Part shown: one piece after another, positions 3,536 to 56,821 of the stretch | Layout of the letters: the number at the start of each line of letters is the position of its first letter | How positions within the stretch are numbered: position 1 is the first letter of the stretch | NCBI GenBank assembly: GCA_964188305.1 | Contig: OZ076894.1 | Reading direction: 5' to 3' (one strand) | Source: Podarcis bocagei | Taxonomy: Eukaryota | Length of the DNA: 64,000 nt | Notes under the pieces: generated by a model | Told to the model about the DNA's origin: nothing | Seen by the model: only the letters and a program-made list of their open reading frames with translations | Database searches by the model: none | Program-made: the position numbers and the translations under genes

Positions 3536-6500
3536 TATATAACACTGATACTGTAACATTACAACACTTTTTCCTCTGACAAACCAATGCAGTAACTTCA
3601 AGCGAACATAAATACTACACTATAGTTTATTCTCTTCCTTGTAGACTACATTGTTCATTAATATTTTAAATACAGTCATAGAAAAAAGAATAAATATCAC
3701 AGTGTTGCGGGTGTTTTATAAAGCTTTTATTCTCATAAGAAATGTAAAGTCCTATCTTCAAATTATTGTGGTAGTAGTAGTCTCATTTCTTTCAATGGCG
3801 AATTGCATCACCACAATAGCTTGTGCAGACATGCATTCTCAGTTTGTGTGAACACAATTTACACTAATATTGTCCGTAAGATCATAACACCCCACAAAGT
3901 TTGAGTGGAAAGAATATCAAAACAAAAACAAAAGCAGAATGCATGTTTGCATCCTGCAGACAAGTGCCCCTCTGATTAAATGAAAGGATGAAAAGTGTTT
4001 ATTGTACAGACTCTGGGTTGTGCATACATATACAATGACAGGGAAATAATATTCTGCTGCTTTACAAAATAGTATTTTGAAGTAAAGCCTGTTTTGTCGT
4101 ATGGTTCATCTTAGAGGGAAATACTCCTCCCCCCTCAAAGACAAACACTTGTTCACTATGTTTGCTTTTCCACACTTGAACACCAGTTTACTGCAATGCA
4201 TTACTATAATTGTAAAATAAAAAATAAAAAAATTCCGCATGGGATGACTCAGGAAACTCGGATGTTATTTGCATCCATGTGATCATCATATATCAGTGAG
4301 GCTGGATAAGGTCAAATAAGCAACATACTCGGACCAAGCTCTTCCAATAATCTTAATTTTAATGTGTTTGTTATTTACTCCTCAACTCTGAAATTAACAT
4401 GCATTCTAACTTTAATACACTAATATTATATTAGCACTGATTACCAATATCAAACTAATGAAACTTGTGATATTCAGAGTAAAACCATCAACCTGTCCTT
4501 TGTTTATGCTATAAAATATATATTATAAATATCCCTTATACCTAACCATAGTTTGGCACTAATAAAGTAAGTAAAAAGCAGGGTTTTTCTTCTTTGCTAT
4601 GACATTTCCTACATGAATAAATTTAAGAGTCTCTTTTTATGTGAAGAAGGTTTTCTACTAACTTTAATGTTTTGCATATAGAAAATATATATCATCCTGA
4701 TATTTAGAGTCCCTCTGCAAACAATACTGTTTCCATGCACATTCTAAGAACTCGTAAGGGAGTTAAGTGCAGCTACCCCACTAATATATAATATAAACAG
4801 AATCTGCGAAGACAAAGCAGTGCCACAGATTTATGAAACATATCACCTCTACCCCACAAAGGTGTCAAATATTAAACAAAGTAGTTTAGGGGACATTTCA
4901 CAATTGGGACATTTTTGTGGTTTTCTAATTGAATGGAACTGCACTCCTGAAATTTATCCCCCCCCCCCCCATTACTCAAGAACGGAATATAGCCTGAAAA
5001 TGGCATTCTTCAAACTATAAATCATGCAACAACATATTTAATATAAAATATAAGTAATGCCACATAAACAAGATCTCATATTACTGAAATGACCTAAGTT
5101 GACGTGTGTTAAAAGTGCCCTGTTTGTTTTTCTTGGGATCATATTTTACTTCTCTGCTTTATTTTAAAATGCTTATAGATTTCAGTCTTTTCTGCCAGAG
5201 AATAATTTTAGTGAACTGTATATGTGTATCAACCCCACTGTAAAATGTGAATATTTACTTTTTGTCTGGAACTAAATGCTGACAGAGCTGATAGGAATAT
5301 AGACATAGGAGAAAATATGCAAATTTCACAGCAGGAATTAGAGAAGCCACTAAACAGTTCTTAAAAGCAGTAGAAAAAGATAAACAACAACTTTCCTGTG
5401 TATTACCTTTCATCCCCAGAGTAATTACTATTAGCATGCAACAGATAGCCAGGTGACAAACTGATATAAGATTCTTTTAAAACATCATATTTCAAAATAT
5501 TTTTGAAAATAAATGGAAGTGCAGAGGAAAAAAAATAGTATTATCACAAATTGTTTCTTATATCTGTCATGCTTTGGTTTGATGAAGTGTACAAATCTGT
5601 CTCTAATTAGTGACTTAAACACCTGTATTGTCCCCCCTCCCCAAAAAAGAAACTTGTTTCCTCTTCAGTTTTTCTCTCAAGCTTCATTCAGGCCACAATA
5701 AGGTCAAAGTTGCATGACCCAGTGGTCTGAAAATCTTAGAAACCCTAACACTTGTTTTGAAACAAATGACTTCTCAAGATGGAGCAGTCTTACTATCAAT
5801 CACCAACAAGTTAATTCTACATAATAAGGCAAGTTTGGATGCAGACTGATATATTGTGAAATGCTGTATCCAAAACTGATTAGAACAACACTCAAAATGA
5901 ATACAGCCCTCCAAACCACTCCTTTTGCTCAGCCACATTAATCTCAATTATAAGAAAACATTTATGATAATGCCTGCTATGAAGAAAACATAAAATAAAT
6001 CAGGTTTTATAAGACAAAAGCAAGTCATTAGTTTCAGAACCAAAAAGGGGAGAGTATGTCGCTGCGGTGATATCCTCTACAGCATCTCTAACTTTCAAAA
6101 CCTGGCTTCTTAAAAACTGGTAACTGCCAATATTAAGATTATACTTAACATTTAAATATTTTTCAATTTTTGCCAGCCTTTAGGTCATTGCCTGTTAACA
6201 CCATAACTCAATAAAAAAACTAAAATCCTTTCAAACTTGCCACTCTCAAGCAGACAGTATGAATGGAAAACATAACTGAAACCTCCAACTTCAAAGAGTT
6301 ACTGTATATCAAACACACTTGACATAGTAGAGTTCTCTTAAAGCAAACAGATTCCTCACAATCAAGTAACAGAAGGTTTCTGTTCTGCACACCAAATGTT
6401 AAGATCCTCAATATACCTGTTACCACGACAAACCTCACAAACAGGTTAGAGAACCAAACCAAACCAAAGACAGAAAGCTATTCATTTACCTTGAAAATTG

Positions 6501-9500
6501 TAGCCATCCCCATGCATAAAATTGCTCTACTGCTGTATTAAAAAAGTAAAATGTCATAGATGTGTTTAAGAATTATGAAAATTAAAATGTGTATGAACTC
6601 TGCTAAATTACGAAAACCTTGTAATTTTAGGTCCCAATCTGAAAATTATCTATTCTGCCTTAATTCTGTTGAGGTCAATGGGACTACTTGATAGGGTCAA
6701 GATAGATTTAAAGATAGCATTTTTAGTCATTTATTCAGGTAATCCTGATTTTATGACCCTAAATTAAAGCCATTTTGGCTTTTTTGAGGACTACTCATTC
6801 CAATACACCATCGTATATAAGGCCTGGTGGTTCTCTGGGAACTGTGGACTTGCACTGGCAGTAGGATTTAATCTGAATATCAGTGAAACCAACAGCAGTG
6901 TTATATTGACAGTACTGGAATCTTGGACAAGGTTCTATGGAGGTCATAAACCTAAGCTTTTTTAAGCATACTATTTTTTCCCCCACCTATTGCATTCTTA
7001 AGAAAATATTAGAAAATGGCTAAGATTCAATATGACAATTCTTCCAGACATGGGGTGGTGATGGCTGCTAAATATAGAGTGGACAATAAGCATTTTTCAC
7101 TGGTTTCAATCAATAGTGTTGTGTTTCAATTTCACAATTGGATACTTGAGCTTCATTCAATTCAAGATGTTTTATTTTACTGACCTTTGAACGACAAGTA
7201 GCTATATTTTGCATAAAGGAGTGTTACTAATACGAGCTTGATACTGTATCATGAGTATGATTGCAGTCTCCTCCCTGTCCTATAAAATACTTTTCCCAGG
7301 ATACAATTTCTCCTGTACTTTTTCCTATACTATTTCTACTTACCGCAGCCAACCACTTACTCCTAAGTAGTCCTACTGAGCAGGAATTGACTCTAAATAA
7401 CTGGCTTGAGAATCAGAACCATAGTTCCCCTCTATTTCTTCACATGCAGGAAAACACTTCCTCCTTACTTCTTAGGTCAACAGAAATTATACATCGCACA
7501 TTTAAGCCTTCTATCTTCTAATTTATTGAAACTACTCTCAATCTACCACATTAGAAGTGCAATAACTTTAATTTACACCAACTATCATACTATAGACTCC
7601 AATGGGACAACAATGGCTTAAATCCAGTCACTTCAGTTTATTGGAGCAAAGGATCTCAAAGTGAGTAAGCAGTTGTTGACCATAGAGAAAGCAGAACATC
7701 ATAATACAGTAAAAAAGATTTCCTAGATTCTGATATAGGCTGTGTGTATGGTCAAGAGTTCTTATAGTGGCCTAGATGCCCCCACCCTTGCCAGGATATG
7801 CTAACTCTTAAGCATATATGTGCATTTTAAGGGGGTTTAAAATTGTTAATTCTGAACACCTTCAGTATGCATATCTGTATGAGTGCATCACTATAGGTAT
7901 CGATGCATTATAGTTATTGATGCATACTAGGGTTCATACCCAGAAAATGAGCATTTTTAATTGGAGCGCAAGCATTCTTTTGCAGTCTTACTCAGAATTA
8001 AGTGCTTCTTAATCACCTACAGTTTACTCCCAAGTTAAGCAGGAATCAGCCTGCAGTCCTAAATCTGGAAATCAAATATGTGAAAAACTGGATCTCTCAA
8101 AGACATGTTTTAAGGCATTATATGCACTGCTTTAAAACTGCAAATCACAATACAATCACAGCACTGAGATTCCGCATACAGAAACATAACAGGCACATAT
8201 TACAGAAATATATTCTGATTTACCATTAAAGTTATTTTGAGATTATGAAACTTCAGATAACAGGTAGTGAACGCATGGGAGAAAAATACTTTGCAATTAA
8301 CATTCTATAAGCAATTTGTGATTTTGTTCAGACTAAACATATACTGCAATCTGATCTTCTAGAGTATAGACTTCTCTTTTGTGCTTGCTTTTTTGACAGT
8401 TTAAAGAAAGATCAAAATACAGTTTTTCTGTTACTGCACAGTAACAAAAGACTAAGTAAAGTCTGAACGTCCAACTTCCAGAGACCACCCAGTGGATTCT
8501 GCTACTGTCTACAAAGGTTTGACAAATACGTTGTCAACAGATAAGAAGTGCACTGCTATGAAAAGAGACAATCTTATCCATACAGATCACACCACAGATA
8601 ACAGAAACCATACCTAAGTCTACCACAAGTTAAGCCCAGGCTGGCATTTATACTCCTTCAGTTTCCCTTACACACTTGCAAATAAACGTCTGGAGTAATG
8701 AAGGGAGAAGGAAAGAAATGAAATTGCTATGAAAGCAGTAGTTTTGTGCTAAATCTAAAGTATAGAGTCCAGTAGCGTAGAAGACTAGATTTTTGCTAGC
8801 TTAGGAGGGAAATGTTTCGGATAACTAATGCGTATGTACACCTTGCGTGACCAGAGAAGGTCGATAAATCAGCAAAGCGCAACCTACTGAATCCTAAAAG
8901 GCAAAATTCTCCGCTCGCCCTTAGAAATTAAAGGACGCTGGAACGACGACGACACCACGTATGTCAACAGACGAGTGTCCTAGTCAAGGCAACATTTCTG
9001 TCTTGTCTCGCACGAGGTGGCGGCTGATCAAGTTGAAGCAACCATCACCCCCCCCCCGCCCCCCACACGCTCCCCAAACACGCAATGCTACCCTTCCTTC
9101 TGCGCCTCTTGCGGTGTCCACAGTCTCAGAAACATCTATACTTCGCGGCGGCGGCGGAGCGCTGCATCGCTTCCACAGGGCACCGTCAAGACCCACATTT
9201 GGCACCAAACGAAAGTCGCTCTGGGTTCTCTTGTCTCTCTCGCCCCCCTCCCCACCCCCAACTGCGCCCGCTCGCCGTCCCTGCTCCTCTTCCCGCTGAC
9301 AGGCAGCGAAGCCTCCGGCAGAGAGAGAGAGAAAGAACAAAAGCCCAAACCAAAAGAAAAAAAGTTTCCAGGCGACTCAAGGGGAGCTTTCCAAATAGGC
9401 GAGAGTTCAAAGTGAGGGAGCAGGGAAAGGAAGCGGGGAAAGAAGGACCCCTTTTCTCCCCCACCCCCCGCCCCGCCGCGCGCACCGGCTCCTCATCGGA

Positions 9501-9569
9501 ACTCCTCGGTACCTCAGCCTGGGACGCGGGCACTAGGACCAGCAAAGCGCGCGAAACGCAGCCACTTAC

Positions 9570-9900
9570 CCAGGGCGCCTTAGCGCGGACTCTCTCCTCC
9601 GCCTTCTCTCCTCAGTTAGCCCAACAGCGCCGGGAAGAGCAGAAGCAGCGGCAGCGCACGCACCATACACTTTGCCAAAAACGGGGAGCGGGTTGAGGGA
9701 GAGAGAGACAGAGAGAGAGGGAAAATCGCGGGAAAGGGGTGGAGAATGAGGGGAATTGGGGGGGGGGGAGAAGAAAAAGAAAACTGTTACAAGTTCCTTT
9801 CCCTGTCCTGCCAGGGGCTGAAGAGAAGGGGGAGGCTGAAGAGGGAGGGAGGGAGGGAGGGAGGGAGAGAGAGGGGCAAGCCCCGAGGAGTTCACTTTCC
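9570..9900 (-). other. Probable non-coding first exon (5' UTR); the 5' boundary is uncertain and could extend to ~10235
   Basis: Consensus donor TGG|GTAAGT with the exon ending at 9570, inside the CpG island. The leader is pyrimidine-rich on the - strand. No ATG-initiated frame stays open to the donor from the ATG at 9666. Gene identity not recognised. Confidence 0.7.
9616..9666 (-). other. Upstream ORF, 16 aa (MVRALPLLLLFPALLG*)
   Basis: ATG at 9666-9664 with +4 G and -3 T, TAA at 9618-9616, inside the putative first exon. Confidence 0.5.
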
Positions 9901-12117
9901 GCAGCTCCCCGGGCTACTCGTCTTTCTCCTGGCAAGAGTCGCGCGCGGGGAGTTTATTATTATTTTTTCCCGCCCTCTCTCAAGAGATGGAAGAAAGCGC
10001 GAGGACGACCCCCAAAAATAAAGTGCCACAGAAGGCGGGGGGAGGGAAGGGGGGAGGAGGAGGAGCAGCAGCAGCAGCCGGGAGGATCTAACTATAAAGC
10101 GAGGGGGGGAGACCCCAAAGGGAGGCTCGGCAGAGGCAGCCGCTTCAGCTCCTGCCTTCCTCGCCACAGAGGGGGAGAGAGACGCACACGCGAGAGAGGC
10201 GCCTACCATAAAGCGAGGGGAGGTCCATCCCCCTGGCCGAGGCGCTGGGGAATGGACTTGGCCATTTATAATCCCCGGCTCCTCTGCCCCGGCATTTGGC
10301 AAACGGGCAGCCGCTCTCCTTGCCCGAGCTTTTCCCGCCAAGGCGCCCCTTTTGCTGCCTTCTGCTGTCAGATGGACTGAACCACCTCCGCCTCGTCCCC
10401 TTTTCTCTTCCCCACTGCCTCCGTTGGTTAATGTAAAGTGCCGAGGCTCCCATGCTGTGTCCAATCAGTGCATCTACCACTAGTGCCATGATTTAGGGGT
10501 CATCCGTGAACAACACTTCACGCTGATGAATGGCTCTTTGCAGCTTTCTGCCCTGATGAGGGTGTCTGCGTGCCGCTGATTGCAAACACTAATGAACTTA
10601 CAGATCCTCATTATACATGCGCCCAGATCCGCCGCCTGAACGAGGAGAGGGACTCGGGTGTGCACCGCTTGCGATTCGGGTGGAATTTGCCTATTTATCT
10701 CTCCACCTATCCTTATTTATACGTCCTAGAGGGTGGTGCGAGAATAACTGCGCTAAATGTTTGCACTTGACCCTGTGCTCTTCAGAGCGATGGGAAGGGC
10801 GCTGCTATTCTTAGGCAATACTTTGGTGGTGGCGCGTGTTTGTTTTTCTTCTAGTTTCTCCCCCCCCCCCCCACTTTTAATTTCCCTCCTCTTGGCTGTT
10901 GTTTCATAGGCTGGGCATGTTAGGTCAGCTGAGTCATTAGAGCGAGGGTGGCTAAGCAAATGACTGCCTCCGAGATTGATGATGAAGCATAGCAGAGGGC
11001 TGTAATTAAGGCTGCCATCCTAGGCGCACTTCGGAGTGAGTCCTAATGAACTCTGCTGGGATTTAGCGCCGAATGCAAAGGCGCAGGGCTGAGTTGCACG
11101 GCTACGCAAGCCTGGAAGTCGGTCCCTGTCTCATTTCCTCTTAATGACCGGCGGGTTTTGGACCAGCCCTCCCTCTGAAATTTAGGCGCGGGAAACGCGC
11201 TCTTAGCTGGGACGAATCCTCGCTCACTTTCTCTCGCATGCACCCGGACGCGCGCTCTTGCCTCGTTGGGCTACGCGGCATCTGCTGGGCAAGAGACGAC
11301 TCCGCCAACTGCCCGCTCCGAAGCTGAAGTTTACACCGAGACTCCCGTCCGCGTCCGCGTCAATTCTTTCTCCCGCCCCGAGGAAGATAACATGCCACGT
11401 CTTCTCTCTCGTCTCCTCTTACGCCTCCCTGTTAAGATCCTATACAGTAATACTTATGTATACCTTATTTTCTTGGTGGTGCGGATATTTTCTCTCTTTG
11501 AGGCTGCCACACTAACCTCACTCACTTGGGAGAAGCCACTTATTTCTCAGTTAATATTCCTAGGTGACTGCGCCTTTACAGGGAGAAATGGTCTGCTTGA
11601 CATCCTAGCATTTCCTTACTCCTTGCGTCCTGTGTAACACAGCAGCCAGAAAGCCGTCCGCCGTCAAACCACACACACATATACACGCTTCCCCCCCCTT
11701 GCCTTCCCAGGTTTCAAAAACTTGTGATGGGGAAGTGTATTAAATTCACAAGAGAGGATGTACATGCAAACAGATACAGACAGTAGCGTAACGCTCTTGT
11801 ATCGTAATACATTAGAACCATGTAGAATCGCAGAGCACCGAGCTAACTTCCGAGCTTCACAGAACTCTTCGTCAGGATCGAGGCTCAAAACAAACAAAGT
11901 AGGTGGGTGGGTCCGTGGGTGAAAAGCAGGTGTGTGTGGAGTAAAAAGTGCAGCAGGCATGGCAGAAGGCCAGTCTGCCATACAGGGAGCTAGCTCTTCG
12001 AGGGCGAACAGGTAGGTTTGTGGCCACATACTGAGCAATCTCGGTTGGGCTGCTGTCCTGTGGTGGCCGGTGCCTGCGATGGCAGCTGACTTTTTCCTTC
12101 CAAAAGACCTCGCTCAC

Positions 12118-18048: not shown

Positions 18049-18380
18049 NNNNNNNNNNNNNNNNNNNNNNNNNNNNNNNNNNNNNNNNNNNNNNNNNNNN
18101 NNNNNNNNNNNNNNNNNNNNNNNNNNNNNNNNNNNNNNNNNNNNNNNNNNNNNNNNNNNNNNNNNNNNNNNNNNNNNNNNNNNNNNNNNNNNNNNNNNNN
18201 NNNNNNNNNNNNNNNNNNNNNNNNNNNNNNNNNNNNNNNNNNNNNNNNNNNNNNNNNNNNNNNNNNNNNNNNNNNNNNNNNNNNNNNNNNNNNNNNNNNN
18301 NNNNNNNNNNNNNNNNNNNNNNNNNNNNNNNNNNNNNNNNNNNNNNNNNNNNNNNNNNNNNNNNNNNNNNNNNNNNNNNN
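18049..18380. other. Assembly gap (332 N)
   Basis: Run of N. Confidence 1.
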
Positions 18381-19920: not shown

Positions 19921-20451
19921 AGGGTTTACACTAGGTACTGGCAGTGGTGGGGGACAGCTCCTTCTGGGCTGTCCACCTTTGGTCCACATCCTGCACTCAG
20001 CTCACACCTGTGGCTCCCAGAAGCTGTCAGCATGTGACAGCAGTCACATCCTGGTAAACAGCTTATACTGGCCAGCTAAACCAGGTAAGGGTTCTCAGAT
20101 CCTTAACCTCTGTTGCCTTGCAGGATATCTTCAGGAGAAAAAGCTAAGGAGGAAACCCTACACAAATCAGGAGTGGAGTCCCTAAGACTGTTGGATGGGG
20201 CCTTGTACACCTTCTTCTGGCAACTCCTGCAGCCTAACTGGTGGCAAACCGATTGCTCTGCTTTCCTTTGGACCTCATCAGCATGGCTGATGAAGAAGGT
20301 ATTGTTATCTGGGCAGTCCAGGACCTCCATACACACTGCCTAAGCTTGTGCTCCGGGGTAGTGATTTCGGTGTTGCTAATGCAGCAATTTGACTTCATCT
20401 CCGGGGCTGCACTCCGTTGTCTCTTGAGACAGACAGATGGCAACAACAACA
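19921..20451 (+). mobile_element. Non-autonomous RTE-type retroelement (5' UTR plus 3' tail, no ORF), copy 1
   Basis: Collinear with 48148-48841 and 55139-55921. Starts AGGGTTTA and ends in a TGTCTC-TT-GAGACA stem-loop plus (CAA)n. Has internal deletions. No clear TSD. Confidence 0.8.
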
Positions 20452-21813
20452 GATATAGTCTTGGACTCCTGGCACTGAAAACAGTTGTCAAGACTGAGAT
20501 CATGGTGAGACCTGGCACAAATTAAATCCTGAAAACCAGGGCATTGCTACCTATTCAACAAGTGGATGGACACAGAGATATCACCCGTTTAATGCTTCAG
20601 GATGCTACTACATGGGCTCAGTTAACAAGATACAGATGAAATGGGGTAAAAGGAGCTCCATACGAATGCTAGCCTCATAAACTTTGAAAATTATGGGCCA
20701 CTAGCAATGTACACATAGGGTTTTTTAGGGGTATGTGATTAGCTTCATTATTCTGGAGATGGCCTCAATTTTCAAAAGTCTAAGAAGTAATTCCCTAGGG
20801 GATGTAGAGGAAAGGATTCTCCCCTACATCTAAAGTTTAAGACAAGAATATTCTCAGATAAAGTTTTAATATGTTTTTAAATGGAAGCTCTTTGATGTTG
20901 CTCAGAAGTTTGCAACTCTAGTTGGAATCTCCAAAAGACTAAATTAGTGGGCACAGTACAGGTGAAATATTCAAATGTACATTATATAATTATCTGTTTA
21001 AACCAAAACATGCTTCCATTTGTCCAAATTGCTATAAAATTTAATCAATCTGTTTGTCTATACAGTACACACAGAGTTTCTTTCTATCTCAGACATGTTG
21101 CATTTCTGATTTTCTAAAATGGAAACCCTTCCACACAGTTCTAATTATATGGCAGGAAAATTCATGTGACTGCGGTCAGCAGAACTTGGACGTGAGTCTC
21201 TAAATATCATTCCTCATCTGAATGGTAGACTGTGAGCTTATAATGGGTTTTATTATAATGGAAGACAACTCCTTACTGAATGACATCATTTGTTTTGCAG
21301 GAGATATACTGATAGACTGGGGCAATCAGACGAAGTTTTTTTTGTCAACATAATGGTATTACTAATTCCCCCGTGGGTAACCTATTATGTACACATTAAT
21401 ATACTGATGTATGGTACTCATCGTATTGTTAAAGATTTAGGATCCTAAGCATATTTCTGTACTTAAAGGAAAGTGGAACAGACTTAGCTGCGGAGAAGGC
21501 TATATAAAATGGTTGGTGCCAGCTATATTATCCCAGTACTCTGATATGTTTTGGTTTTTAAACTAGTACTCACACTCCCCAACCAGACTCCCCAACTATA
21601 GTGCTGGAATTCTTTAAAAACGGAGGTCTGTAGAGTGAGCAGGAATGGGTGTCAGATTCTTGGCAGGAAAACCAACGTATTATTCCCATAAGAGTTGGAA
21701 AGAATTATTAAGAGAATTACACAATGTAAATATACATGTTCAGTTGAAATGGTAGCTTACTGAAAATAAGGTACTGAAAGATATTTAATTCACATGGAAA
21801 TTCTAAGCCACAC

Positions 21814-22194: not shown

Positions 22195-25145
22195 CAACCT
22201 AATTTGTGTCAGCAGATTCAAATACCTTGATTTCACATCATGGTCACAATTATGATAACGGCTGCTTTATCAAACCTGTTGCTACTTCTGTCGTTAGCAG
22301 CTAAAGATAGGTCTTTTTTAGGTTATCCTGAAGGACATTACTGATGGCCAAGGCAATATTAACTCACAAGTTGTGTTGGCACATAGTATAACTTCTGATT
22401 GATTGGTGGAATGAATGATAAATGGGACTGATTAGTATTTTATCTTGTTCCCCAGGTCATGAACCTTTTAATCTTATTCAGCTATACTAGAGAATATTCA
22501 ATGTCTCTGAAATTTGGACTCTGAAGTCTCCACTAAACACAACAAATGTAAAGGTTTGTATTTTCTATTTCATTAATGTGTTTGGGTTCGTCACTATAGT
22601 GTAGATTTAAGCCTGACAAATCTATTTATTGTTCCATCAAAAGTGTCCAGTTGATGTTCTGTTCTTCACTCTCCACTTGCGTCTTCATGTGGAAACATTA
22701 CAAAACTGGGATCCCATGTAATTATCCCTTTTGCTGAGATTTATTATTAATAATCAAAATGTTTGTGCAAAGGCAAACAACTTTTTGGCCATTTCAGACA
22801 CATGCAAGGAAACAATATGTAGCCTTAAGAGATTGGGGGGGGGGGGGCAGAACTGCAGTAGAAAGATAGAGGAAGCTCAAGCTGGAGTTTTAGGCTTGCA
22901 GTCTAGCCGATATTCATAATGTTCTGTTCGTAGAAGTGCCAGAGAATGGTAAGAGGAGGGATGCCCTGGTCCCGAAGCAGGAAAATAAACATATTTCCAG
23001 TTCTTGCTCATTTTGTACATGCAGATGCATATCAAGCTACAGTATGTAAATAAAAATTGCACAGTGCCTAACACTGAATCTAATATTGCAAATCCTGATG
23101 GGCAGGAACCCCAATATTAAGCAGGTCAAAAAAATGGCGATTCTTGCCAGAACTAAATTTAGTGCCATATGCAAAAGCAACAGGGAGCCAGAGCCCTCTC
23201 CGCACATTGCAAGCTGTGAACAAGGCTAAAACAGAACCGAGCTTATGCTAGCATCTCCGCAAGTTCAGCTAAATACTTGTTTTGAGATAACACTTAAGTT
23301 CCAGTGGGCTGCTTAAATGCCTGAGAGAATGAGACCTAACCGAATGGAGTAGTCCCTGTAGAAAACCTAAGTAAATTAGAGAAGACATAGACACAGCAAT
23401 GATCACAGTGAAGATGTGCTGATAAGACTGTGATAGTACTAATATAAACAACAAATATTTGCTGCATTGTTGGAGGAGGTGAGCATCGGGCAAATTATTT
23501 TCACTTGCTGTATATAAGTTCATATTATTAGTTCATTCCTCCCAAAAGAAATAGTGATGTAATGTTCTGTTTTTTCACATTATTTTAAAAACTGTGCAGT
23601 CCTTGTGTCTTTTTTGTTTATTTCAAATACTTTATCAGTGAACAAATGATGCAGCTGAATGAGACATACAAACTACAATTGATTTAGAAGACTCCATCTA
23701 TATATCAATATGAAATACTAAACATATTCAGATAATAACAGAAAGAAAGCTGCTAAAAGAAATACCTAGTGCCCCATAACCTATTTATTTAAACAATTTT
23801 CACTACTAATGTAATATTAAGAATGGAAAGCTGCCAAAACTTGGCAATCAGGAATCTCTCTGGCATAATAAAACCATGCCCTAAAACCGTAGCGGTAGAA
23901 ATCAACACAGTCACTTTGTCTCCACAGTACACTTAACCATTTGCACTGGGAAGGTATCAACACAAAGACTGCAGAAAACCTACACCAGCTAATGCAAATA
24001 GTTTCCTGATATCAACAAAACTGTACTGAATCCTTTTCTAATCCCCAAAAGTCAAATTAGGAGATCAGGAACTATCAGAATCATTGCAAAAGGTACAAAG
24101 CTATTTCTTGCTGCATCTTGGATGTAGCACTAAAGTGAATCTGCACTCAGAACATCATCACAATTAAACATCCATGAGGTGTTTTCTTTTTTAAAAAGAA
24201 TTCAGAAATCAACTACTTTGGCATTACTAAATGGCTAAATCATGTTGTGGATGTCACAATTGTAAGTGCGAATTAGAATTACAATGGCAGGTTCTCCATT
24301 TTATCATGTTTTTCTAGTGTTGACATAGACTTGGACACCTTGCAGGTATGTATCACAGCAGCCCAGGGAGATAGGAAGTAATTATCAAAGGCTAGGAGTC
24401 AAGTCAATACTTAAAACTGTAAGCCGTTTTTATCTTATTTCCATGAATAATGTTTCTTACTTTAAAGTGCACATGTCACACTTGGGGTGGGTGGGTAAAA
24501 GAAGCATAGCATAAACAGTGGTAATAAAAGTAGTCACTTAGCTGAAGATGACTTGAATGTTAAAATATTACTTTTAATAAAATAAAGTTTCCCCAAATGA
24601 GTGCATAACAATTACAATACAGATTAATGAATGTAAGTGGAGTTTGGGGATTTTCTCCCCTTAAAAAACTAATCTTATCCAAAAGACTAGATCTTCATCA
24701 TAATTTGTCCTAAATATTTTATTGATTTCATAGGAGCTGCTTGAGTCCCCTTTTTAACACAGCGATACATGGACGGAGCAATCTCATTGATCTAACTAGG
24801 TCAGTGTTCCAACTAGGTTTTACACAGGGTGTAATACAGCTTCTGCTGTCTCTGCTTCTCACACAGATACTGATACACAAGCAGCACAAGGCAAAAATAG
24901 CCTCATTTTTACAAACATTTCTTGTTGTATGAATAGCTCACTTACCAGAATAGTATAATATGTGCTCAAGATGAGAATGTACAAGGTGCAGCTACAGCAA
25001 TTTTCCTGGTCAGGGATGTACCTTCTGTAACTTCTCTGATGGTTGAAGTTGGAGCACTTATCTACATTACACTTCTCACAGAAATATATTATTTGTATGA
25101 GGAAAATGGATGAGAACAAAAAATACGATGTGCTAATTGACTCAA

Positions 25146-25423
25146 TGCTCACTGGAAGGACAGATCGTGAAGCTGAGGCTCCAATACTTTGGCCACCTCA
25201 TGAGAAGAGAAGACTCCCTGGAAAAGAGCCTGATGTTGGGAAAGATGGAGGGCACAAGGAGAAGGGGACGACAGAGGACGAGATGGTTGGACAGTGTTCT
25301 CGAATCTACCAGCATGAGTTTGACCAAACTGCAGAAGGCAGTGGAAGACAGAAGTGCCTGGCGTGCTCTGGTCCATGGAGTCATGAAGAGTCGGACACGA
25401 CTAAATGACTAAACAACAACAAC
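25146..25423 (+). mobile_element. BovB (RTE clade) LINE, 5'-truncated 3' end
   Basis: Frame 25137-25412 reads SLEGQIVKLRLQYFGHLMRREDSLEKSLMLGKMEGTRRRGRQRTRWLD, the BovB ORF C-terminus. (CAA)n tail and perfect 11-bp TSD AATTGACTCAA (25135-25145, 25424-25434). Confidence 0.96.
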
Positions 25424-25511
25424 AATTGACTCAAACTTTGTCTTTCCAACAAAAACTTCCAAATGTGCCAGTTTGGGATTTTAGTGACCATTAGATCGTG
25501 CAGAAAACAGA

Positions 25512-47945: not shown

Positions 47946-48147
47946 AATGAAAAGCTGAATAGAGATATTTATGTGTCAATAGCTTATGTGACATCTGTTT
48001 ATACATTGGATTTGTACTGTGCCAATCATTTTCTTATAGAAGCCTTTTATGTGTAATGGGTTAAGAATTTCCTTGTTAAAAATACAGGTGTGCTTCATAG
48101 GCATACATAACATGACATTATTCATGTCAGCATGTTAAAGCATATTT

Positions 48148-48841
48148 GGGGTGTATGCGGTGTTAGGGGAGAGGTAGTACCTCTGGTGGAGAATATGGCA
48201 TGCTCTGTCTGGGTTAGTTTGAACACCTTTGGTCCCCACCTTGCACTCAGTTCTCACCTCTGACACCTAGGAGCTGTCAACATGTGACAGTGACCACATC
48301 CCGGGAATGGCTTCAACTGGCCAGCTAAGCCAAGTGAGAGTAGCTGATGGGCTTCAAACCCTGAGTGAGTGAGGAATTTCCCCTGCATGTGAAAAAGGGC
48401 TCCAGTGTATTGAGCGGACAAGACCAATAGTCTGTCCAACGGTCAAGAAGGTGGTTTCTGCACATGCCATAGGGAGAAGTGAGGGGCAAATGAGGCTCAT
48501 CTAGGAAAAAAGAAAACTCTGGTCCTAAAACTTCACTACCTTGCGGGAGTAAAGCCCTACACAAATCCAGAATTAAGTCCCTAAGGCAGTGGGATGGGGC
48601 CGTGTACACCTTCTTCTTGCAACTCCTACAGTCAAGCTGGTGCCAAACATATTGCTCCGATTTCCTTGGGACCCCATCAGCGTGGCTGAAGTAGGGGAGG
48701 GAGTCTTGTCATCTGGACCTCCATACACACTGCCCAGGCTTGTGCCCTGGCAAGGTCACTTTGCTGCTGCTAACACAGTGATTTGACTTAACCACTGGAG
48801 GCGCACCCCATTGTCTCTCAAGACAGACAAATGCCAACAAA
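48148..48841 (+). mobile_element. Non-autonomous RTE-type retroelement, copy 2 (both ends intact)
   Basis: Perfect 12-bp TSD TAAAGCATATTT (48136-48147, 48842-48853). Begins GGGGTGTATG and ends TGTCTCTCAAGACAGACAAATGCCAACAA. No ORF. Confidence 0.9.
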
Positions 48842-49929
48842 TAAAGCATATTTTCACTAATATCTGACACATTATACATAAAGAGATAGGAAAGTAGAGT
48901 GCATTTTAAAGCACTAATACTGAAAATGGCTCAGTTCAGATATGTTACAGATTGATTTATAATTAATACCCAGCTAGGTATTGCCTTTACGTTAGGTATT
49001 AACAGCACAAGAAGCACCACTCACTGAAGTGGATGAGAAAGCTTCTGATCATGTGTGCAACAGAGTGCATTAAAGGGTCCGGTCTTTGTCTTAGAGCAGG
49101 GATTTACAATATCTGTTACAAATCAGCAGGATTTTATAAAGCAGCTGTAAGAAATAATTCTGACCCATCTTAATTGGACAGTAGGATATGCCTGAATGGA
49201 ACAGCAAATGCAGCCTAATGCTGATATATGCAAAAATCAGATTTGCATTTTTTACTTAAGGAAAGCTCATTACCAATGCTACATTTCAAGCAAATAAGAA
49301 CTATGAGTACTCAACAAAGCTCAGTTTTAAAGTTTTTAAAATTTGTATAAAGAATTGGAGACAGCCTTATATTGTGTGTAGAAAGAGCCATCTAATTAAA
49401 ACTAATTGTGCTAACTGGATCTTCAGTGTGGAATTATGTAACATGCATTCAACAAGCCTATTATCAATACCTTGTTGGTTCAGAAAGAAAAACATTCTGA
49501 TGTATTAGTGCTTATGGGCTTTGTTGGCCTGGTTTGGATGTTCATATCTTTGTTCAAGATACAAATTCATGGGATAGCTCATCTCCCTTCTTCAGCTTGT
49601 CCTGCAAGTCTTCAATTAACCACAGGTAGGGAAGGAGGAATGGTGAAATAAGGACTTTATATATAGGGACTTTATCAGGGGGTGGCCCAGGGGACTTCAG
49701 CTTTAGGTCTACTGCGGGACTTCGATTTTGTCCCTTTGCTCACTTCTTTTTTCTTTAAAAATGCTTTGAGTGGTGTTCAGACCCACTGAAGTTAATGGAC
49801 ACGACTGATTTAGGTGCATTTATTTCAGTAGGTTCATTAATTTCAGTGGGTCTGTTCTGAGTAGGACTTAGTTGAATGCAACCCTTTACTTGTGTAGTGG
49901 TGGTAAGCACTGTCATAATTATAATACTT

Positions 49930-52955: not shown

Positions 52956-55138
52956 TTCCAATTTGTCTCCCATCTTCAGAAAACATACCAGTAAAGCCTA
53001 ACTATGTAGAAACATAAATTTCAAAATAATGATTAAAGGCAAGCCTGTGTGTGATGCACTGCAAAGAGATCCAGGAATCTCTACTCCCTGTGGTGTCTGG
53101 CCAAGTGAGGGACCTGCATCTGACTAACAAGCATTGGAATCTGGGCATAAAAATGCTACCTATCTGCTCTAAGTCCACCTGGGAGAAGAGTACCCCTTTG
53201 ACATACTTAATGGCATGCCTATTTTGTCCCTGAGGCACAAGGTTCCTCTGAATTACCAGCAGCACATTTCACTTGGGGCCCCAACATGGCATATTGCCCT
53301 TTGTTAAAGGTAAATTGCATTGTATCCTTCTGTACACAGAGGATTCTCTGAACAAGTCCAGAAGAGATTTATGTGATTAAAAGGATCAGGGAGGCAATAT
53401 ATCCTTCTTTCTGTATCTTCCAAATCTGCTCCAGAGGGTTGGAAGAATCTTTGGAACAGAATGAAAAGTAGCATCCGGGGAACAAACCAGAATTTTCAAA
53501 AATAGCTTTCCTCCCCTTCCATTCATAGAAACCTCTATCAAATAAAACAACTTTCTGTGAATGGAATGAGACCACACTGGAACAGCCCATGACATAAAAT
53601 TAATTTGTGAAATACTTGTTTTCTCTGAATCCACACAGTGAATCATTAGTGAAATTAACTTCTAGCCAGAGGTCCATTTTGTTTAACAATTGGTCCATTG
53701 TGTAGTGTTTATGTATATACACGTTTGTGTTTCAGGATGCACAACTTGAAATGCCTCTTCCTATTAACACTGCTTACTAATGCACTACTTCAATATCTTT
53801 GAAGAAGTGTCTAAAATCAACACCTGTAGACTTCTCAAAGACTTCTGAGCAGAATGCAAGTTCACTGCCCTCTCATCCTGTTTCACATATCTGTTTATGT
53901 AATACAATGTTTCTAGACTGTAATTGACACCAGTAAAGGAAATTCACACAAAGATATTATGTCACAGCAGGCTCTGCACTGGCAAATCAGAGAAAACACA
54001 CACACAAGCGAAACCCCTTCAGAGAGCACTGCAATGATTTATAAATGAAGCTGAGAGCAGAGGTGTGATATATGAGAAATATAAGCAATTAAATGTGGGA
54101 TATTGCTGGGTGTTGACAACAGACCGTGTATAGTACATACAATTCAACACCTTCATGTTCCCATGAGGTGTCAAGATTCTCATCCTCACATTATTCTACA
54201 CCTTTAACAGGAATTGCATGGTATAGGCACTGATGCCCATGTGTGGTTCTGCCATGTTTCAAATAAAGCAACAAAGGAATTAGATTATGAACAAAGCAGG
54301 TAATTTTAGTCAGCTTGGCTAGAAAAGCTGTGGGGGAACTATAAGCAACATTCATAAACTTATAAATATTAACAATTTAAGTAATAGGCTATACTACAGG
54401 TTTAACTACTGCAACATGGCCAAACATTCAGAAGAACTGTAATGGTTGTGAATATGTGTTTGAGAGTGTTCCCAACAATTAAACGAAATGAGTGTGCCTT
54501 TAAAATATTCTCTCTTTGATTCTGTTGATCAGTTTGTCATATGTTGTTAAACCACTGTCTCACATGAACTAGACAATCTAACTGATATTACACTTTTATA
54601 TGTCTGCATGATTGTGGCTCTAGGAACAAGAGGTAAGTGTAAAATGCTCCAATTCTTCAGTACTCTGATGGTAGTGAAAACCTCCATCCAGCCTCTCAGA
54701 GCCAAAGTCTATTCTATACACTTCTTTCACGCTAACATCTAATATACTGAACAGCAGGGAGTTGTAGACTGCTATAATGACTCATGATTTAGTGAGATAC
54801 AGTGGCATGTTTAAATAGATTCCAGACTAAATACCTGTGGGCAAACAGCATTAAGAAGTGGTATCAGTACTACTGATTATTCAATGAAAATGTATCTTAG
54901 TTCATAAACTAATCAGATTCCTAATGATTATTAGTCCCCCAGGGGAGAGAAAATTAAGATAGAAGTAGTTTTTAAAATTACCTTTTGGACTAAATTCTAT
55001 TTTATTTTTAATAAGTATGTATATTTTATTTTCTAAAGCATTATGTAGTAAGGTACTCTGCAGCTCCAGCTGAAAGATCTGCTGCAGGGTTACAGGGTAG
55101 CCCCAACTCCACTACAGCAGTGTGGTTAATCCTACCAA

Positions 55139-55921
55139 GCCACAAGGCAGTAGAATTTTAGGATCAGATCTTTCCTCCACCTAGATGGGCTACCTTCCCA
55201 GGTTGACAAGCCCCATCTGCTCCTCGCTTCCCTTCTTTATTGCTGGACTCACTACTAGTCTCGTCGCTCAATCCACCAGAGCCTATCTTTGCATGCAATG
55301 AAAGTTCCTAACTCACGGAGGGTCTGAGATCCATTGGCTACCCTCATCTGGTTTAGCTGGCCATTTGAAGCTGGGATGTGGTTGTTGTCACATGTGGAAT
55401 GCAGGATGAGGATCAAAGGTGGACAAACTACTCCAGAAGCAGCATGACTTCCTCCACACCAGAGGTACTACCCCTCCTCTAACACACCATATGGCATAAA
55501 CCCCACCAGCTTCAGGAGTAAACCCCATGGGAACATCTCTGGGAGAAGAAAAAGCTAAAGAGTAAACCCTACACAAATCCGGAGGCTGTTGGATGCCTTC
55601 TTGTACACGTCCTTCCGGCAACTCCTGCAGCCAAGCTGCTACAAAATGTATTTGGTCTGCTTTCTTTTGGACCACATCAGTGAGGACGAGAGGGAGATAT
55701 TGTCATCTGGGCAGCCCAGGACCTCCATACACACGGTCCAGGCTTGCACCCCAGAGATATCACTTCGGTGCTGCTTTCAGCAAAAAACAATGCGGGAGGC
55801 AGCAACTATGAGTTACCATCTCTGATGTAACACCAGGTGCCGTGATTTCCCAGTGGTTTGACTTCACCTCCCGAGGCACACTCCATTGTCTCTTGAGACA
55901 GACAGATGCCAACAACAAAAA
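55139..55921 (+). mobile_element. Non-autonomous RTE-type retroelement, copy 3, with an inverted 5' half
   Basis: 55139-55504 is the reverse complement of the 5' half of the 48 kb copy, and ~55505-55921 is the 3' half in + orientation. An 11-bp TSD AATCCTAC(C/A)AA bounds it (55128-55138, 55922-55932). Confidence 0.88.
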
Positions 55922-56821
55922 AATCCTACAAACCTCCCTCAATACAATCTTTATAACATAAGGAGCTGCTTTATACTGAGTCACACCAATGGACCTCTCA
56001 GTATTGTGCTTAAATGCTTAAATATTCTGCCAGCCCCAGAGACAAAACAATGCTGGGTACCTGGAGACCAAATGGTCCCAAAGATTCCTTCAGCCATTCG
56101 CAGCTGCCTTAGCACCGAGAGACTGCATGGAGGCAATCACTTCACCTCCACCAAAATGTCCTGAGTGCTTGTTAAACTATATTCTATTTCTTACCCTGGT
56201 CCACACTATCCCAATTACAAGAAGAGCTGATTTTGCTTGGCATTTGACTGTCCATTGCAGTCTTTAGACAGGGTTGGCTAAACCCTAGCCCAGGGGCCTG
56301 AACCACACCTGCAAGCCATTTTTTTTGGCCCCTGGAAATACACCAATTCTGGTGCTGCCAGTAACAAAAACCCAAAACAAAGCAAAACACCACAGCACAG
56401 TGGTGGCTTAAATTTCTCTCCTCAACCCAGCACCCTGAATGAGAATGCAAATCGCCCCTCCTAATCATTAGATTGATAATTTGACAAGCAGAGGGAGAAA
56501 AATTCTACTTCTCCCTCAAACTAGGAATTTTTAGGGATGCAAACCCTACTCCAGTGGTCTGCATTGGGGAAGGATGTGTTTTTTAAGAGGATAAATTTTC
56601 CAGGAAAGATGGATGGGGTAAACATCATCCCACAACACAAACCCTATTACCCCAAGAGTAGTTGATGGCAAGTGTATTTTTGTGGATACAGCCTCTTTTT
56701 CCTGGGTGAGAGAGATCTCTCAATTGACAATTGACTTGTCCATCAAAATGAAAGATTCCCTCCTTTTCCACTTCCTCCCCACTCAAGCATAGTGCATTTT
56801 CCTGGTCATCATGCCTTGACC

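Follow-up and report, generated by a model that had tools for sequence, protein, structure and literature searches.

A candidate HDV-like ribozyme with a hairpin in L3 at the 5' end of an ORF-less lizard retroposon family

How a non-coding retroposon with no Pol III head obtains a uniform 5' end is the question raised by a 694-bp element in Podarcis bocagei (contig OZ076894.1), which lies in a 64,000-nucleotide stretch of DNA analysed here as a whole (the window). The original prediction had placed a self-cleaving ribozyme of the hepatitis delta virus (HDV) type, with a hairpin inserted in its loop L3, at the exact 5' end of this element and its relatives. The first ~190 bases of the element, copy A, can be drawn as an HDV-type self-cleaving RNA cut at the first element base, an unproven candidate suggested by the letters. 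We treat the HDV-like reading as a legitimate and statistically non-trivial hypothesis for the source copies of the family, and not for the decayed copy A as an active RNA.

The family and its 5' end

Three copies were found in the window, and a search of the window with a profile of the three (nhmmer) detected no further copy. Their coordinates and flanking target-site duplications (TSD) are as follows.

48136-48147, no strand: left TSD of copy A, TAAAGCATATTT, an exact 12-bp repeat of 48842-48853
48148-48841, + strand: copy A, ORF-less retroposon ending ...GCCAACAAA, defined by its TSD and an ORF scan
48842-48853, no strand: right TSD of copy A (TAAAGCATATTT), an exact match to the left TSD
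19921-20452, + strand: copy B, without the stretch equivalent to 195-398 of copy A
55128-55932, no single strand: copy C, with an 8-bp TSD AATCCTAC, its head inverted and its body (55560-55915) on the + strand

The perfect 12-bp TSD fixes the first base of copy A as G48148, as originally proposed, and the 3' end reads ...ATGCCAACAAA. The longest ORFs of this copy are 65 aa on the + strand and 94 aa on the - strand, and it is probably a dead, decayed insertion that is itself no longer active. The head of copy B (19921-20086) starts with AGGGTTTA at 19921; no TSD was detectable around this copy. In copy C the first ~270 nt are inverted (55504 down to ~55231 on the - strand) in a twin-priming-like arrangement, and the inverted part still extends to the usual first base of the family, with the start GGGGTTTA at 55504. 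Copy C has also lost 30 nt to a deletion, which took away the P2 and P3 5' strands, the initial 8 nt of L3 and the greater part of the L3 hairpin's 5' strand. The three copies share the start (G/A)GGGT(G/T)T.

An exhaustive search of representative proteins with the 94-aa antisense ORF gave one match, P0121 (153 aa, Podarcis lilfordi), which led to a fourth, 5'-truncated copy in that species (OX395143.1, locus L010, 10001-10462). P0121, annotated as a 'hypothetical predicted protein', corresponds to an antisense-strand ORF of this truncated copy, and the annotation is most likely an artefact; used as a query, it matched only itself in the protein search. A word search gave no match for a spurious 61-aa ORF of the element, and a BovB-derived Podarcis lilfordi locus (L008) contained no copy of the retroposon. 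Searches of metagenome, genome and viral collections with the head pattern, and of the viral collection with a 3'-body pattern, returned chance matches only, none of them extending beyond the pattern.

The claim that the family lacks both an ORF and a Pol III head held up, with no tRNA or other Rfam-recognisable head detected. ARAGORN detected no tRNA head in the element, and an Rfam scan of copies A and B, its HDV, CPEB3 and drz families included, returned nothing at gathering score or at E values up to 10, with models that encode no pseudoknots and penalise inserts. A Pol III head derived from tRNA, 7SL or 5S RNA was rejected for the family, since none was recognised by ARAGORN or Rfam.

At its other end the element is like a BovB LINE fragment of the same window (25137-25429) at the very 3' terminus only; the comparison with the BovB 3' end at 25350-25429 leaves only the terminal ATG.C.AACAACAA in common. 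This BovB/RTE LINE 3' end carries a 91-aa ORF, the C-terminus of ORF2, followed by ...ACTAAACAACAACAACAA, and the ORF is 84% identical to the Podarcis lilfordi 'hypothetical predicted protein' P0023. Elsewhere the window contains a CpG island at 8900-10500 (60% GC versus 39% for the window, 100 CpG, many overlapping ORFs that match nothing in Pfam), which probably marks a promoter or first exon, and a run of 332 N at 18049-18380 (assembly gap or masked).

From public DNA runs of this lizard and its relatives, 4,900-5,800 related contigs were placed on the element. Read depth over the first 22 nt was ~30,000, versus 77 in the single-copy flank, and was about the same over the next 37 nt and in the element middle. 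Such even depth from the first 22 nt onward, far above the flank, indicates that the 5' end is real and shared and that the family is abundant. Together with the three copies it bears out the proposed 5' end common to the family. The last 230 nt of the element were ~10x deeper than the head, and the deepest head region in the reads was 48207-43, within the candidate J1/2; this unevenness suggests modules common to other families, or many 5'-truncated copies. As a separate observation, the block CCACCTTTGGTCC in the proposed J1/2 had ~5x the depth of the proposed catalytic core (uneven depth was noted at 48207-48243 and 48614-48650).

The candidate fold, part by part

The HDV-type fold is a composite across copies. 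Its candidate parts, in the coordinates of copy A, are listed here in 5' to 3' order.

48148-48154, + strand: candidate P1 5' strand, GGGGTGT, with 7/7 pairs to 48296-48302, one of them G-U; seen in the minimum free energy (MFE) fold of copy A
48155-48251, + strand: candidate J1/2, 97 nt, with a possible internal stem
48252-48260, + strand: candidate P2 5' strand, pairing with 48331-39
48262-48264, + strand: candidate P3 5' strand, GAC in copy A, GGC in copy B and the Podarcis lilfordi copy
48265-48292, + strand: candidate L3, 28 nt; first 8 nt ACCTAGGA, then a hairpin (48273-79 / 48285-91, loop ACATG)
48293-48295, + strand: candidate P3 3' strand, ACC in copy A, GTC in copy B, ACC in copy C, GCA in the Podarcis lilfordi copy
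48296-48302, + strand: candidate P1 3' strand, ACATCCC, nearly invariant in the three window copies
48303-48304, + strand: GG, candidate P1.1 partner, which would pair with CC at 48266-67
48305-48323, + strand: P4 region, TGGC/GCCA (48308-11 / 48320-23), 4 bp, private to copy A
48324-48330, + strand: candidate J4/2, GCTAAGC, with the candidate catalytic C48325
48331-48339, + strand: candidate P2 3' strand, pairing with 48252-60

Every motif of the original prediction was found where it had been placed: in copy A P1, P2, GG, P4 and GCTAA with C48325; in copy B ACCTG/CAGGT of P2 (20006-10 / 20082-86), GGC/GTC of P3 (20012-14 / 20043-45), TCC (20015-17), GG (20053-54), GCTAA (20075-79) and the 7-bp L3 hairpin (20023-41). 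The proposed HDV order, P1-J1/2-P2-P3-L3-P3'-P1'-GG-P4-CUAA-P2', stands for the head of copy B, the least decayed copy, and fails in copy A, which is without P3 (one of three pairs, GAC/ACC), without the first uridine of L3 (its base is A) and with two P2 pairs broken. The two helices called P2 were correctly read as letters, and they turn out to be two halves of one helix in one register, the distal six pairs (TCTCAC/GTGAGA) being kept in copy A and the proximal five (ACCTG/CAGGT) in copy B. The sequence elements, their order and the 5' end are observations.

The proposed cleavage position is 5' of G48148, which pairs with C48302 as the G1-Y rule demands. In copies B and C a T at P1 base 6 leaves one mismatch (6/7 pairs), and the basal pair is A-U in copy B; this mismatch and the decay of copy A had been rightly conceded from the start. 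Within J1/2, GGGGAGAGGT (48167-76) may form a stem with a 3' strand inside the conserved block ACCTTTGGTCCCC (48226-38), with one two-sided change (alifold, 3 copies).

P3 is complete in copy B only. It keeps two of three pairs in the Podarcis lilfordi copy and has lost its 5' strand in copy C; its 3' strand reads GCC in one further copy, the fifth, which is expressed and known from a loose-end consensus alone (before 48298). In the candidate fold the 3' strand of P1 follows directly after P3'. L3 has 28 nt versus the usual ~7-8, and the excess is a 20-nt insert with a clean 7-bp hairpin, which begins past the eighth L3 nucleotide and is followed by one nucleotide and then P3'. The conserved L3 cytosine is replaced by A in every copy that retains L3.

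The CC/GG pairs of P1.1 are present in copy A, copy B and the Podarcis lilfordi copy, 100% paired and invariant, hence uninformative on covariation. C48302 and G48303 form a CpG, and G>A at 48303 was seen in 37% of the family read depth, as expected from CpG decay. P4 was found as proposed in copy A; the other copies have only two pairs. GCTAA is present in copies A, B and C, and GCTAT in the Podarcis lilfordi copy; J4/2 is 6 nt, with CUAA followed by two nucleotides before P2', and a catalytic role of its cytosine is putative.

Two other readings of the L3 region were considered. The hairpin could be extended by 48270-71 / 48294-95 in place of P3, which pairs in copies A and B; this was rejected, since the 5' side is GA in copy B, the Podarcis lilfordi copy and the expressed copy, and the GG of copy A looks derived. 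The L3 hairpin taken as P3 itself was also rejected, with a loop lacking CC and 4 nt between P3' and P1'.

The family reads provide majority letters, given here for the reported single positions and not as a full-length consensus. Five of them disagree with copy A, each in ~80-95% of the depth: G at 48260, T at 48265, A at 48329, G at 48333 and G at 48339. With these letters P2 has eight Watson-Crick pairs plus a U-G (8-9 bp), L3 begins UCCUAG and J4/2 reads CUAAAC. The majority letters thus mend P2 and L3, so that both broken P2 pairs and the missing L3 uridine represent decay confined to copy A. Separately, the majority-form P2 3' strand with its following bases (48331-48342) resembles a strong 5' splice donor, CAG|GTGAGG.

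Pattern rarity, folding energy and competing explanations

The HDV-like drawing may owe its resemblance to chance. The head would then be a leader, like a 5' UTR, of a non-autonomous element that depends on RTE/BovB, and its uniform 5' end would stem from the start of transcription at a promoter, internal or upstream, in a few source copies; we consider this doubtful and still a substantial possibility. To weigh it, a descriptor was applied with P1 of 7 nt (at most one mismatch, its start no more than 2 nt from the 5' end), a 3-bp P3 abutting P1', GG immediately after P1', CC at L3 positions 2-3 with L3 up to 40 nt, a 5-bp P2 located 0-2 nt upstream of P3, and C.AA 0-3 nt before P2'. A strict form added L3 = UCCNNG, the published U...G signature. 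Only copy B passed the descriptor; copies A and C failed.

In the loose 5'-anchored form, 66 of 20,000 dinucleotide shuffles of copy B passed, as did 45 of 126,638 genomic anchors in the window (~20 loci). The strict 5'-anchored form was passed by copy B and by 17 of 60,000 shuffles (~3 in 10,000), a rate to be read with the fact that the descriptor was composed after the match had been seen and that many repeat families and several ribozyme motifs had been inspected by eye. The 5'-anchored HDV-like pattern is rarer than chance. The unanchored loose core is common, at ~1 per 6 kb of window. Across 128 kb (both window strands) the strict core with the catalytic C was found in copy B only, and decoys with that C changed to A, G or T were found at 0, ~3 and 3 loci, one T-decoy locus being copy B in another register.

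These counts bear on the chance explanation in both directions. A drawing chosen by eye among many repeat families and ribozyme motifs, a fit in one of three window copies, loose cores every ~6 kb and decoys about as many as true cores all speak for it, as do the lack of covariation and of an Rfam match, the ordinary folding energy, the non-canonical L3 and the A at the conserved L3 cytosine. It is opposed by the strict 5'-anchored match rate of 2.8 in 10,000, by majority letters that improve the model and do not erode it, by extra L3 nucleotides that form a clean hairpin, and by the absence of a promoter-type head.

Folding energy was ordinary (z = +0.15 for copy A and -1.63 for copy B), and P1 was present in the MFE fold of copy A and in the alifold of copies A and B. 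On the four-copy alignment 81% of cells pair under the HDV model, versus 31-47% when the model is slid. Covariation in the helices, to which the original prediction had looked for confirmation, gave no signal beyond shuffles in the four copies: two two-sided changes were found, 261 of 500 shuffles equalled this, and every measure was reached in about half of the trials. The sole two-sided change in P1 (G-C in copies A and C, A-U in copy B) is given no weight, because it involves the CpG at 48302-03 and the copy without a TSD.

The MFE fold of copy B suggests another possibility, in which 48252-48339 is one long imperfect hairpin with 'P2' at its base, a non-catalytic RNA structure that would act, for instance, in stabilising the RNA, binding protein or packaging for retrotransposition. 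The 3' half of this MFE fold is indeed a long nested rod with P2 at the base (-67.7 kcal/mol), which pairs in 79% of cells on the same four-copy alignment, with its helices 2 and 3 at 89-91%. The HDV-type fold of copy B reaches -46.3 plus about -5 to -12 kcal/mol (P2), ~9-16 kcal/mol worse; keeping P1, P3 and the hairpin costs ~21 kcal/mol versus the MFE, of which P2 gives back 5-12. This gap weakens the HDV model without excluding it, since nearest-neighbour rules ignore tertiary contacts. P2 is common to both structures, so the mended helix of 8-9 bp favours both. The rod has no covariation either (one two-sided change, a score reached by 471 of 500 shuffles), and it leaves unexplained the exact 5' terminus pairing with 48296-302 and the arrangement of UCC...G, GG and CUAA. 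We regard a purely structural rod as unlikely.

Two RNA-seq runs of a close relative (X23 and X24), ~12% of each run being read, covered the head at a depth of ~3-10, with 5' ends piling up nowhere in it, an outcome that carries no weight either way. RNA libraries of this kind may under-sample uncapped RNAs without a poly(A) tail. One strong RNA signal was observed at 48298-48362, a 64-nt island (~110-fold, ~100 reads per run) whose source is a single diverged copy inside an unrelated transcript (flank consensus agreement 0.79-0.88); its RNA is probably antisense to the element, since the first mate lies on the + strand.

Weighing this evidence, we hold it to be nearly an even call, leaning slightly against, that the family head is, or was in the source copies, an HDV-like nested double-pseudoknot self-cleaving ribozyme.

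Known ribozymes and retroposons, and a possible route of release

The genomic HDV ribozyme has an L3 that starts UCCUCG, and the antigenomic J4/2 is CUAA. The lizard candidate resembles HDV in its G1-Y pair, two C-G pairs of P1.1, an L3 start of UCCU.G with a U...G pair, and a CUAA J4/2, and the first 8 nt of its L3 have the length of the HDV L3. It differs in an L3 of 28 versus ~8 nt, an A for the conserved C, a J1/2 of 97 nt, an almost absent P4 and a J4/2 of 6 nt.

Among squamate retroposons, the Sauria/Squam SINEs are short non-coding elements mobilised by BovB, with a BovB-like (CAA)n-type tail and a tRNA-derived Pol III head. The present family is similarly a short non-coding squamate retroposon, whose tail resembles BovB at its extreme end; in contrast to the Sauria SINEs it is ~700 bp long and has no tRNA head detectable by ARAGORN or Rfam.

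A published comparative descriptor of HDV-like ribozymes requires G1-Y, two fixed C-G pairs in P1.1, U19, C23 and G24 in L3, and CRRA in J4/2 (PMC6326823). The candidate shows G1-Y, P1.1, the L3 U and G at HDV spacing, and CUAA, and departs in the conserved L3 C and the short L3. The U...G reverse wobble of L3 has been described (PMC6326823, PMC13635239); it adjoins the active centre, whose Mg2+ it binds (PMC13635239). An inactive R2 ribozyme of a sow bug carries C-to-A and G-to-A changes at conserved L3 sites (PMC3774820). In R2 ribozymes 23 to more than 700 nt separate P1 from P1' (J1/2), some have no P4, P2 has 5 bp or more, and a quarter have one or two mismatches atop P1 (PMC3774820); large J1/2 domains are also known in the RTE-type mosquito ribozyme (PMC4908430). 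The long J1/2, weak P4 and P1 mismatch near the top therefore lie within the published range of retrotransposon HDV-like ribozymes (PMC3774820, PMC4908430). A limited literature search found no described HDV-like ribozyme with a helical insert in L3.

Closest in position are the RTE-clade ribozymes such as mosquito drz-Agam-2 (Ruminski et al. 2011, cited in PMC3774820), which share the extreme 5' location and cleavage at the first P1 nucleotide; drz-Agam-2-type ribozymes also have the same helix order and a large J1/2 (kinetics in PMC4908430). The lizard candidate differs from these in belonging to an ORF-less vertebrate element and in its 20-nt L3 insert. R2 and the R2 SIDEs (PMC3774820, PMC3414825) are likewise relevant, the latter being short, internally deleted, ORF-less and non-autonomous R2 derivatives that keep the ribozyme at their 5' end and have their 3' end recognised by a partner reverse transcriptase; release from a co-transcript, a long J1/2, a dispensable P4 and tolerated mismatches at the P1 top are features to which we propose a resemblance. 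In contrast, R2 targets a specific site in 28S rDNA and is transcribed along with it by Pol I, while the lizard family is dispersed, with TSDs, and the P1.1/P3/L3 region of R2 is a compact 15 nt, unlike the lizard candidate. In trypanosomes the autonomous and non-autonomous pair L1Tc/NARTc shares a common 5' HDV-like head, Pr77-L1TcRz (PMC3185411, PMC3383444), a 77-nt sequence which doubles as an internal promoter and contains a minimal ribozyme without an insert. ORF-less elements that retain a 5' HDV-like ribozyme are thus known in both the R2 SIDEs (PMC3414825) and NARTc (PMC3383444).

By analogy, the element, having no recognisable promoter of its own, would be transcribed within a longer host transcript. 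Its head would fold, and the CUAA cytosine (C48325 in copy A) would act as general acid in a cut 5' of G1, yielding the uniform GGGGT(T/G)T start. An RTE/BovB-type reverse transcriptase that recognises the tail ...ATGCCAACAA would then copy the released RNA. The fold would be a variant one, with a self-contained 7-bp hairpin after the eighth L3 nucleotide and just before P3'. Folding, catalysis, read-through transcription and the partner enzyme are what we infer here, and the release from read-through transcripts is pure inference, the RNA reads showing no ends. The fuller proposal, that an HDV-type ribozyme with a whole extra helix in L3 is used by a promoter-less, SINE-like vertebrate retroposon to exit read-through transcripts and represents a structurally distinct new subclass missed by standard descriptors with their short L3, is put forward tentatively, as possible and somewhat doubtful.

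The proposed biology would have precedents in the R2 SIDEs (PMC3414825) and NARTc (PMC3383444), and the helical insert in L3 would be the new part, if true. If the head does not cleave, the family provides a calibration case, in which a 5'-anchored HDV-like pattern at ~3 in 10,000 can mislead. If the head cleaves, HDV-like ribozymes would extend to an abundant ORF-less squamate retroposon, the L3 of the catalytic core could bear a helical insert, and searches that fix L3 at ~7-8 nt would miss members; self-cleavage would then concretely explain the uniform 5' end of an element that codes for nothing and has no Pol III head.
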